DNA of 64,000 nt, from NCBI RefSeq assembly GCF_006345805.1, contig NC_042998.1:137702001-137766000 (forward strand), in the 5' to 3' direction. This stretch comes from Octopus sinensis (taxonomy: Eukaryota). Both the position numbers and the translations under genes were made by a program. The notes beneath the pieces are model-generated. The model was given only the letters and a program-made list of their open reading frames with translations. It had not been told where the DNA came from and did not search any database. Below, one piece after another: positions 42,201 to 45,200 of the stretch (position 1 is the first letter of the stretch; the number at the start of each line of letters is the position of its first letter).

Positions 42201-45200
42201 TTTCTACATTAAATGAGTGTACAACACCACTTGTGTTCATACTAACATAAAGTACACGTTTTTTCTCTGATTGCATCCCAGTAACATTATCAACTTTTTT
42301 TGCAACTATGTCACCTTTAATCTTTTTTTCCTTTTCATTAGTAACTTCTCCTGAACTGTATTTTACCTGTTCACAACTTGCAGATGAACTTAACAATCCA
42401 ACAGCTTTCTCTTTTGTCTTTAAAATATTAACATCACTTGCATTCATTCCATTTAAATTAGTATCAGAATCTTTCAACTTTTCATTGTTAATGCTGTCAT
42501 GAGCACAGAACTGAACTAAAGGATCTGTCAAACAGGAAGTTATTTGAGATGCATTTTTGATTGGAGACTCAGCTGCTTTAATGTGGTTACTTTTATTTTG
42601 AGAGGAAATTGTATCAGACAAGTCTGTTAATTTACCAACCTGTGAGCCATGTGTGTTTGCCTGTTTTGAAGGTATGCCAGAGGTTTCAGAAAAACAGGTC
42701 CTCTTTGATCCTGCCTTAATATGTTCTTTTTGATCCTTCAAAATACTTCCTCCTGTTCTGCTATTAGATATATTAGTAACACTTGGTTTAAAATCAGTCA
42801 CTGAAACAAGATCATCTTTTGGAAAAGTCTTACCTCTGACATTAACAGGAACATCCATTTTAAAAGATTCTATTTTCGCACTTTCAATATTATTTAATTC
42901 TCCAGGTATATTTACTTTGTTTATTATATTTGAGGGAATATTAACTGGCTGATCAGTAGGCTTATTACAAGAGGTCAGAAAACAGTTATCTGCTGGTAAT
43001 TTTGAAGTGTTAGTTGAAGGCTCTTGAGCTAATTTATTAAATTTGTCATTATCAAATTCAGTAACATCAAATAAATCTTGCCTATTTGGAACTGTTTTGG
43101 TGGATTTAATTATGCTCATTTCCTCTGTAGCTGATTGTGATGTATCAACTAGAGTCTTTTTTGGACAGGACCAGGAAGATTCTCCTATATGAGACACTGT
43201 AGAAAGAACTAGCTCCTTTGGAACTGTCTTACTGGCAGTCACAGGCTGAGCACGGTCCCCGAAATCTGATTTCTTTTCAACTGAACCATTAAAATCATTC
43301 AATTCATTCTTGTCAGCACAAATTAAACTTGATAACTTTGAAGCAAACTCAAGATTTTGCCCTCTGGGCTCCCCAATAAGTTCATTAGAACCAGAAATAT
43401 GTTGCTTCTTAATGGCTGGTTCAGTTATATCATGTGTATTTGACTGTTTTGAATGTATGTCAGAGGTTTCAGAAAAATATGTTTTCTTTGATCCTGTTTT
43501 AATATGTTCTTTTTGATCCTTTAAAACACTTCCTTCTGTTCTGATATTAGAAATATTGGAAATAGTGGCTTTAAAATCTGTCACTGAACCAAGATCATCT
43601 TTAGCAGTACTATTTGCTCTGAAACTAACAGACTGCATTCCATTTAATTCATATGGCATGTTTTCTTTGTCAATTATATTCTTTGGGGGAAGATTAGACT
43701 GATCAAAATTATTAGAAGATGGTAGAATACAGCTATCTGCTGGCAAATTTGAACCAGAAATATTTTGCTTCTTAATGGCCGGTTCAATTATATCATGTGT
43801 ATTTGACTGTTTTGAATGTATGTCAGAGGTTTCAGAAAAATATGTTTTCTTTGATCCTGTTTTAATATGTTCTTTTTGATCCTTTAAAACACTTCCTTCT
43901 GTTCTGATATTAGAAATATTGGAAATAGTGGCTTTAAAATCTGTCACTGAACCAAGATCATCTTTAGCAGTACTATTTGCTCTGAAACTAACAGACTGTA
44001 TTCCATTTAATTCATATGGCATGTTTTCGTTGTCAATTATATTCTTTGGGGGAAGATTAGACCGATCAAAATTATTAGATGGTAGAATACAGTTATCTGC
44101 TGGCAAATTTGAACCAGAAATATGTTGCTTCTTAATGGCCGGTTCAATTATATCATGTGTATTTGACTGTTTTGAATGTATGTCAGAGGTTTCAGAAAAA
44201 TATGTTTTCTTTGATCCTGTTTTAATATGTTCTTTTTGATCCTTTAAAACACTTCCTTCTGTTCTGGTATTAGAAATATTGGAAATAGTGGCTTTAAAAT
44301 CTGTCACTGAACCAAGATTATCTTTAGCAGTACTATTTGCTCTGAAACTAACAGACTGTATTCCATTTAATTCATATGGCATGTTTTCTTTGTCAATTAT
44401 ATTCTTTGGGGGAAGATTAGACCGATCAAAATTATTAGAAGATGGTAGAATACAGTTATCTGCTGGCAATTTTGAAGCACTAGTTTTAAGTTCTTTAGCT
44501 AATTTACTAAATTTACCATCATTAAACTGAGTAGAATCAAATAATTCTTGCGTGTTTAGAAATGATTTGGTGGATTTAGTTACAGTCAATTCTTTTGAAG
44601 TTGACTGCGATGTATCAACCAGAGTCTTTTTTGGACAGGACCTAGAAGATTCTACCATATAAGACTCTGTACTTTCTTTAAGAACTAACTTCTCAGGAAC
44701 TGATTCACTGGTAGTCACTGGCTGAACATGGTTCTTGAAATCAGATTTGTTTTCAGTTGGTTTGTTAATGGCTGGTTCAATTATATCATATGTATTTGAC
44801 TGTTTTGAAGGTATGTCAGAGGATTCAGAAACACAGGTCCTCTTTGATCCTGTCTTAATATGTTCTTTTTCATCCTTTAAAACATTTGCTCCTGTTTTAC
44901 TATCAGTTACATTAGTAATACTTGGTCTACAATCACTCACTGAACCAAGACCATCTTTTGCATTACTATTTGATTTGAAATTATCAGACGGCATTCCATT
45001 CAATTCACATGGTATGTCTTTTTTGTCAATTATATTCTTTGAAGCAAGACTAGGCAGCTGAACAATAGAATTATTAGAAGAGGGTGGCATATAATTATCT
45101 GCTGGTAATCTTAATGGGTTATTTAGGTCTTTAGTTGGTTTACAAAAACTTTCATCTATATTAAACTGCTTGTTTTCACAAAAATTCTCAATATTTTCTA

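Follow-up and report, generated by a model that had tools for sequence, protein, structure and literature searches.

What is the repeated stretch in the middle of the Octopus sinensis KNL1 gene, and does it supply this checkpoint scaffold with additional docking sites? The question arises from a window of 64,000 nucleotides (nt) of O. sinensis DNA, the whole stretch analysed here, whose letters match chromosome CM016860.1 of assembly GCA_006345805.1 at 100% identity and which encodes the RefSeq protein XP_029652814.1 (2162 amino acids, aa) exactly. An initial annotation of the window described five modules starting with LPAD, at 42640-45108, and read them either as extra PP1-docking sites or as decayed TxxF-MELT-SHT repeats, in both cases an unusual design for a checkpoint scaffold. 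The data presented here point elsewhere: in our judgement, the region is quite probably a lineage-specific array of block repeats, made by recombination and close to neutral, lying in the disordered middle of KNL1 and contained in one giant exon.

Identity of the gene

The minus-strand gene is KNL1, as first annotated, because the encoded protein carries N-terminal SSILK and KRVSF motifs, two T(V/I)YF...MDLT units and a C-terminus whose profile matches human KNL1 RWD structures. Specifically, the SILK and RVSF motifs of PP1 recruitment are found as RRRSSILKLP and SKRVSFANY in the RefSeq protein as well as in the exons of the window, and the MELT-like repeats of the disordered middle are represented by the units TVYFDRNDSMDLT and TIYFNKTHYAAGNMDLT, both of which are kept in Argonauta. 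The C-terminal coiled coil and tandem RWD were recognised with a profile built from three octopod C-termini, which matched the human KNL1 RWD structures 4NF9 (E=7.5e-10), 8Q5H chain K (E=9.5e-10, spanning positions 167-459 of the profile) and 4NFA. With Pfam alone, neither the full KNL1 protein nor the giant exon was recognised; its matches to MbnP, Calici_MSP and a domain of unknown function (DUF) on these two queries were discarded as sub-threshold noise.

All the exons of XP_036355557 and XP_029652814 were placed in the window by tblastn at 93-100% identity, with exon 1 at 60945-60919. The giant exon is enclosed by an open frame at 41404-45903 of the minus strand, and the two canonical MELT units near its start gave a weak match to Pfam MELT (exon residues 140-156, E=0.2). 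The open reading frames (ORFs) found on the plus strand at 43919-45061 were set aside as antisense by-products of the repeat. The features of the locus are collected in Table 1.

Table 1. Coordinates of the KNL1 gene and of its repeat array in the window; on the minus strand, each element starts at its higher coordinate.
Feature	Position	Strand	Remarks
O. sinensis KNL1 gene (LOC115225977)	18130..60945	-	from the MGVDDENAG first coding exon to the last RWD exon
N-terminal PP1-docking RVSF, genuine (KRVSFANY)	55469..55492	-	motif scan and exon mapping
Giant coding exon, 4439 nt, disordered middle region	41439..45877	-	acceptor CTAG/A, donor G/GTGAGT; junctions agree with the RefSeq protein
Two canonical TxxF-MELT units (TVYFDRNDSMDLT and TIYFNKTHYAAGNMDLT), the sole ones	45274..45477	-	regular-expression scan
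Module A, 121 aa	44746..45108	-	block ANVLKD...KRTCV...SNTY at 44788-44889
Linker A, 92 aa, the homologue of linker B	44470..44745	-	holds SCPKKTLVDTSQS and LFDSTQF
Module B1, 121 aa	44107..44469	-	block GSVLKD...KKTYF...SNTH at 44155-44256
Module B2, 120 aa, 3-bp deletion	43747..44106	-	block at 43795-43896
Module B3, 121 aa, begins LPADS	43384..43746	-	block at 43432-43533
Linker B, 128 aa	43000..43383	-	40-aa insertion compared with linker A, with one helix predicted in it
Module C, about 127 aa, 11-aa insertion	42619..42999	-	block GSILKD...KRTCF...ANTH at 42649-42750

Architecture of the module array

The five modules are 120-127 aa long, each begins with LPAD, and from A to C they follow one another with periods of 213, 121, 120 and 249 aa. 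The translated stretch reads as originally described, down to the GSILK at 42736-42750 and the KRTCF at 42691-42705 of the last copy. Tandem Repeats Finder returned one array, at 43384-44476, with a period of 363, 3.0 copies, 97% matches and a score of 2088. B1 and B2 differ by 4 nt and a 3-bp indel, and each of them differs from B3 by 8 nt, so that pairwise DNA identity among the B copies is 97.8-98.9%; at the protein level we counted 5-7 differences, in agreement with the initial estimate of about 5-7 of 121 residues. Module A is more distant from the B copies, at about 57-58% protein and 80% DNA identity.

When module A and its linker (213 aa) were compared with a B module and its linker (249-250 aa), the two aligned over their full length at 59-60% identity, the sole large difference being the 40-aa insertion in linker B; the linkers share 53 of 92 residues. 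Since the two super-units align end to end, the older module-plus-linker duplication, already suggested from the 213- and 249-aa periods, is real. No trace of a third linker was found downstream of module C (p=0.95-0.98).

Each module contains a Lys/Ser-rich block of 34 aa with the general pattern G-S-[IV]-L-K-D-x-K-E-H-I-K-x-G-S-K-[KR]-T-x-F-S-E-x-S, of which GSILKDQKEHIKAGSKRTCFSETS is a peptide example. Three T-x-F motifs, namely SVTDF, K(K/R)TxF and LFD(S/V)T(Q/E)F, are present in each super-unit, and linker stretches such as ESSxSCPKKTLVDTSQS are as well conserved as the module block. As a separate observation, a KEN tripeptide lies within DKEN(M/I)(P/F)YELNG, at 44362-44394, 43639-43671 and paralogous sites and at residues 490-503 of Argonauta KNL1, where nothing else of the module can still be recognised; the tripeptide occurs in B1, B3 and Argonauta, and is absent from A, B2 and C.

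History and distribution of the array

The initial annotation proposed to count the modules across cephalopods and to search proteomes with a profile of the module. The count gave A, one B and C in O. bimaculoides; A, B1-B3 and C in O. sinensis; and, in the independent assembly of O. vulgaris, A, three full B copies and the first 11 codons of a truncated fourth, starting with LPADS as does O. sinensis B3. The O. sinensis and O. vulgaris orthologues differ by 1 nt in B1 and by 2 nt in B2, and the B copies of the two species are positional orthologues, B1 pairing with B1 and B2 with B2. Eight derived sites are common to all B copies of these two species when compared with the single B of O. bimaculoides. 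In addition, synonymous divergence (dS) is 0.027 between B1 and B3 and zero between B1 and B2, against 0.05 between the exons of O. sinensis and O. bimaculoides. Taken together, the shared derived sites, the positional orthology and the low dS place the amplification of B after the split from O. bimaculoides and before O. sinensis and O. vulgaris parted. In the latter species, the extra copy joins B2-type sites to the tail of O. sinensis B2, a hybrid-like arrangement that would be expected of unequal crossing-over, and turnover of the B array has gone on since the O. sinensis/O. vulgaris split.

These data point to a stepwise origin. A super-unit of about 213-250 aa, consisting of the 121-aa module and a linker, was duplicated before O. 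bimaculoides separated from O. sinensis and O. vulgaris, giving the order A-linker-B-linker-C; following this split, module B alone was amplified head to tail as a 363-bp unit. The resulting array, under weak constraint, would chiefly provide disordered spacing or form a 'second repeat' in the KNL1 scaffold.

As to the profile search, a profile of eight modules run against 1.84 billion representative proteins matched the Octopus KNL1 cluster and one chimeric model of 744 aa only. The latter is part of a segmental duplicate of KNL1, in decay, that sits on a second O. sinensis chromosome, and searching with the C-terminal profile likewise retrieved fragments of a decayed KNL1 duplicate only and no further cephalopod or mollusc KNL1. 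The O. sinensis duplicate lies at 16.74-16.79 Mb of CM016876.1, with about 97% DNA identity, and has nt 1-1686 of the giant exon fused to nt 4196-4500, one exon inverted and, at NVLK of module A, a frameshift. Its gene models are LOC118767041, LOC118767042 and a zinc-finger chimera, and a similar fragment exists in O. vulgaris.

In Argonauta hians KNL1 the module profile gave a weak match (9.8 bits) at its positions 26-68 only (DKENIFYELNG...), the region of the motif block not being recognisable; Argonauta appears to retain half of one module copy. This protein has arrays of its own. About nine copies of PNP(I/V)EVT(K/R)P stand directly after its second MELT (residues ~345-430), where O. sinensis has a single RPVEITNV, and a further array at residues ~1000-1210 consists of more numerous units of about 19 aa, such as LPESVVSNELPTKKPQVEK. 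The string I/V-E-V-T-K-P resembles M-D-L-T-K-P, and a MELT-like unit may have expanded there independently.

The reading frame of the O. vulgaris gene deserves a separate description. In GCA_951406725.2, OX597815.1 (~36773-37420 of the stretch compared), the fourth B copy ends after LPADSCILPSS at a frame-shifting deletion of 356 bp; about 340 bp downstream, 56 bp are duplicated in tandem, which brings the frame back. About 114 codons of linker B are out of frame and contain stops, and KNL1 is annotated there as two models, CAI9717641 and CAI9717642. The disruption could stem from an error of assembly, from an allele without function or from a splice that was not recognised.

Copy number and the assembly

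The RefSeq isoforms X2 and X3 are 2041 aa long and are short of exactly one unit of 121 aa, namely B3. This could mean that the three tandem B copies are a mis-assembly and that the true O. sinensis gene has one or two, the more so as some transcript evidence seems to be drawn from a two-copy template and the artefact test covered a single O. sinensis assembly. However, B3 carries five substitutions that are found neither in B1 nor in B2, four of them unique among the seven B copies compared, and B2 has a private 3-bp deletion; therefore, the B copies did not arise from duplicated reads. In O. vulgaris, whose assembly is independent, there are orthologues of B1 and B2 only 1-2 nt apart, one copy more and the beginning of the copy with LPADS, and two-copy transcripts fit a copy-number polymorphism or a collapsed transcript assembly equally well. 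A simple assembly artefact is unlikely, because the O. vulgaris assembly is also multi-copy and B3 has substitutions of its own, and we regard a true gene with fewer than three B copies behind this assembly as extremely improbable.

Internal splicing is also an unlikely origin of X2 and X3, since no GT-AG intron can be placed at their sole possible junction. These isoforms more plausibly reflect two-copy templates, through polymorphism or collapsed transcripts.

Disorder and selective constraint

AlphaFold2 modelled the module with a pLDDT (predicted score of the local distance difference test) of 53, a predicted template modelling score (pTM) of 0.10 and no secondary structure, on which grounds a folded domain of 121 aa was rejected. 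The super-unit reached a pLDDT of 45, with a single helix inside the linker-B insertion. The insertion (NLEFASKLSSLICADKNELNDF...) supplies residues 130-152 of the model of B3 plus linker, its only segment predicted as helical, at a pLDDT of about 70. Polar and charged residues, together with Gly and Pro, make up 66% of the module.

The ratio of nonsynonymous to synonymous substitution rates (dN/dS, Nei-Gojobori) over the whole giant exon is 0.92 when O. sinensis is compared with O. bimaculoides, from which it differs at 38 synonymous and 133 nonsynonymous sites. Taken separately, the modules gave 1.45 for A, 0.54 for B and 1.05 for C between the same species, and 0.5-1.1 among paralogous modules. 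A dN/dS of 0.55 has been reported for primate KNL1 repeats (PMC4558858), and the octopus exon is thus under weaker constraint than these.

The motif pair S(I/V)LK and KxTxF, whose conservation the initial annotation set against that of the flanking residues, behaved in a mixed way. The 34-aa block as a whole is the best-kept part of the module, and the 10-aa spacer between the motifs turned out to be as invariant as both of them, with the invariant positions of the block evenly spread. Among paralogues, dS and dN are both roughly halved in the block, and its dN/dS is no lower than outside (the tests per comparison, p=0.08-0.37, being underpowered); the halving of both values would be given by partial gene conversion or by a locally low mutation rate. 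The pair is best read as part of one somewhat better-conserved block of 34 aa, which falls outside the definitions of both the PP1 SILK-RVxF site and the TxxF-MELT-SHT unit. The likeliest role of the block, if it has any, would be that of a low-affinity site under a basophilic kinase (K-[KR]-T) and not that of a canonical docking motif.

Several observations weigh against an array that drifts nearly free of constraint. Invariant columns make up 16 of 34 in the block and 20 of 87 in the remaining module (Fisher p=0.014, 13 modules compared), and some constraint or gene conversion must therefore act there. The pooled dN/dS between orthologues is about 0.5 in the blocks and about 1.2 outside, but the three blocks yield just 8 nonsynonymous and 4 synonymous differences and the parts outside 27 and 6, too few to test. 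When the disordered region of 1227 aa is shuffled, a loosened pair, SILK...(K/R)x(V/I/T)xF, arises in just 1.2% of cases, a result that is suggestive at most, as the pattern was fitted post hoc and all the module copies go back to a single event. Binding of Inhibitor-2 to PP1 takes place via SILK and a very degenerate RVxF, a precedent showing that binding is not absolutely barred when the V position is polar. Finally, the species sampled were three Octopus and one Argonauta, with which site-wise selection tests are underpowered.

The proposed PP1 docking

On the first of the two initial interpretations, the modules would be extra, weak PP1 sites, each made of a SILK-like motif followed 10 residues on by a degenerate RVxF (K-K/R-T-x-F), that recruit PP1 to the middle of KNL1; binding could be turned off if the Thr were phosphorylated by a basophilic kinase, for example Aurora B. 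The order of the motifs is correct, the SILK-like one coming ahead of the RVxF-like one as at the N-terminal site; LK, K and T are invariant in 13 of 13 modules; and SKRTCF is locally similar to the genuine SKRVSF. In addition, anchoring through SILK is precedented, as this motif can keep a regulator on PP1 when RVxF is displaced (PMC6406801).

The RVxF consensus is [K/R]x(0-1)[V/I]x[F/W], in which the Val and Phe side chains give the main contacts (PMC6406801). None of the five O. sinensis modules matches it (KRTCV; KKTYF in three copies; KRTCF), because Thr sits at the V/I anchor, a primary hydrophobic contact, and copy A has lost the Phe; the only strict SILK...RVxF pair of the protein is the N-terminal one. 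The loss in copy A, an F-to-V change, is seen in O. sinensis and O. vulgaris, while O. bimaculoides A retains the Phe. A strict [GS]IL[KR] is likewise confined to copy C (GSILK), the B copies having SVLK and copy A NVLK, so that Val or Asn-Val stands for the SILK Ile region in four of the five copies. Asp follows the Lys in every copy, a residue that the SILK pattern of ELM disfavours at this position. From Lys to Lys, the spacer is 10 aa in the modules and 26 aa between the N-terminal SILK and KRVSF.

Conservation does not single out the motif residues either: they are no more invariant than the spacer, it is the block as a whole that is enriched in invariant columns, and its dN/dS among paralogues is not reduced. 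The motif block is missing from Argonauta and module copy number varies freely among sister species. Smith-Waterman alignment of the modules with the N-terminal PP1 region did not rise above shuffled sequences (p=0.38-0.81); calibrated in this way, the method lends no support to an origin of the module from that region or from the MELT units. Inhibitor-2 is a precedent for PP1 binding through SILK combined with a non-consensus RVxF, but it also has a long helix across the active site, and nothing comparable is predicted for the modules. We therefore consider the modules very unlikely to be extra PP1 sites, and the proposal of additional docking is not borne out.

The proposed Bub docking

The second initial interpretation takes K-T-x-F-S-E-T-S-D-I-H/P-S-K-Q-S-N-T-H for a former Bub-recruiting unit that has lost its Met and its phospho-Thr, in which contact of the T-aromatic pair with the BUB1 TPR might persist. 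The succession of T-aromatic, D-I-x and S-N-T-H mimics TxxF...M-D-I-T...S-H-T, and the modules resemble the human TxxF(Y)-MELT-SHT and nematode TF units in having a Thr closely followed by an aromatic residue and a Ser/Thr-rich tail, ending in S-N-T-H, repeated in the middle of KNL1. Decay is known for repeats of KNL1, as is the independent gain or loss of motif slots (PMC4558858), and in C. elegans T-aromatic motifs alone can recruit BUB-1 through the TPR (PMC10996584). That each super-unit holds three T-x-F motifs, and that octopus KNL1 has two intact MELT units only, would also be in keeping with such a role.

Nevertheless, the elements that define these units are not in place. No copy contains M[DE][ILVMF][ST], which upholds the annotation of the module as non-MELT; the MELT slot reads S-D-I-H/P, with His or Pro in all copies at the position of the phospho-acceptor Thr, and the succession of TxxF/Y, M-[ED]-[ILVM]-T and SHT is absent, S-N-T-H/Y standing for the last in A and B and A-N-T-H in C. 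The nematode/insect TF motif for the BUB-1 TPR is [D/N]-[D/E]-T-phi-x-phi-F (PMC10996584). In the modules the residues ahead of the Thr (K-[KR]-T-x-F) are basic rather than acidic and the aromatic residue is at T+2, one or two residues closer than in TxxF (T+3) or in nematode TF (T+4).

Pfam MELT found nothing within the modules, and Smith-Waterman comparison with the genuine TxxF-MELT region (p=0.50-0.59) gave no motif-level alignment, the lone match at p=0.018 being in an unrelated segment. Moreover, TYF is a recent Cys-to-Tyr change from an ancestral TCF, and as it is confined to the B copies of O. sinensis and O. vulgaris, the likeness to T(V/I)YF is secondary. A decayed or re-purposed Bub-recruiting unit is, all considered, a very unlikely source of the module, contrary to what had been suggested.

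A combined version may also be envisaged, in which the block is an octopus-specific, phosphorylation-gated docking element, either a weak PP1 site (SILK plus degenerate RVxF) or a T-x-F for the BUB1 TPR, and the recent amplification of B tunes checkpoint strength or silencing in a KNL1 with two MELT units only; we hold this to be improbable. If the block did bind PP1 or BUB1, a new short motif would have been born and amplified within a checkpoint scaffold, which the present evidence makes unlikely.

Other features of the locus

The N-terminal SILK is interrupted by an intron (57840-57866 and 57320-57349, minus strand), with RRRSS near 57843 and ILKLP near 57349; the second of these exons opens with ILKLPLSTIDVNKQ. 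At about residues 55-70 of the giant exon (window region 45660-45700) we found DTSFLEKVMADVPL, in which SFLEKVM..PLSS is common to Octopus and Argonauta. As a lead only, we take this string to resemble the vertebrate KI1 motif (..DTTSFLANLK..), a binder of the BUB1 TPR. KI motifs have been reported without conservation outside vertebrates (PMC4558858).

Upstream of KNL1, an ORF of 298 aa (62949-63845, minus strand) shows a weak PHD-finger match and looks like the tail of a retroelement. A short dispersed repeat with the core GCTTTTTACRTGCCACCRGCA was counted at 12 places in introns and flanks, where 0 were expected, its sites including 26173-26255, 50441-50461, 61253-61334 and 62580-62729.

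Comparison with known KNL1 repeat evolution

The analysis of KNL1 across eukaryotes by Tromer, Snel and Kops (2015; PMC4558858) described species-specific block duplication, homogenisation with few DNA substitutions and unequal crossover, together with repeats of a second class, motifs gained and lost as modules, and cases in which no MELT could be made out. As block duplications, second repeats and MELT-less repeats were thus already on record, to call the octopus array an unusual scaffold design was an overstatement. The text of that study mentions no mollusc, and a literature search on octopus KNL1 returned nothing relevant.

For KNL1 biology, the locus offers a mollusc example, with dated steps, of a scaffold of fast-turnover disordered repeats in which the unit is long and MELT-less. 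With regard to the checkpoint, octopod KNL1 keeps two canonical TxxF-MELT units only. In addition, the repeat explains why gene models disagree, the RefSeq isoforms being one unit apart and the O. vulgaris model being split in two, and the copy number of such an array is not to be trusted without spanning reads.

The arrays of Tromer and colleagues and that of the octopus occupy the same protein and the same disordered region, flanked by the PP1 site at the N-terminus and the RWD domains at the C-terminus. They share a duplication of blocks, after which one unit was recently amplified with very few DNA substitutions, copy-number differences between close relatives and weak purifying selection: in O. 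sinensis the 363-bp unit is present in three near-identical DNA copies, copy number and content differ between close relatives, and the Argonauta arrays are unrelated. The octopus array departs from them in its unusually long unit (121 aa, with a super-unit of 213-250 aa), in having five copies only and in the absence of a MELT-like core, by which the module falls with the 'second' or MELT-less repeats of PMC4558858. In conclusion, the octopus array fits a fresh example of the rapid repeat evolution already known for KNL1.

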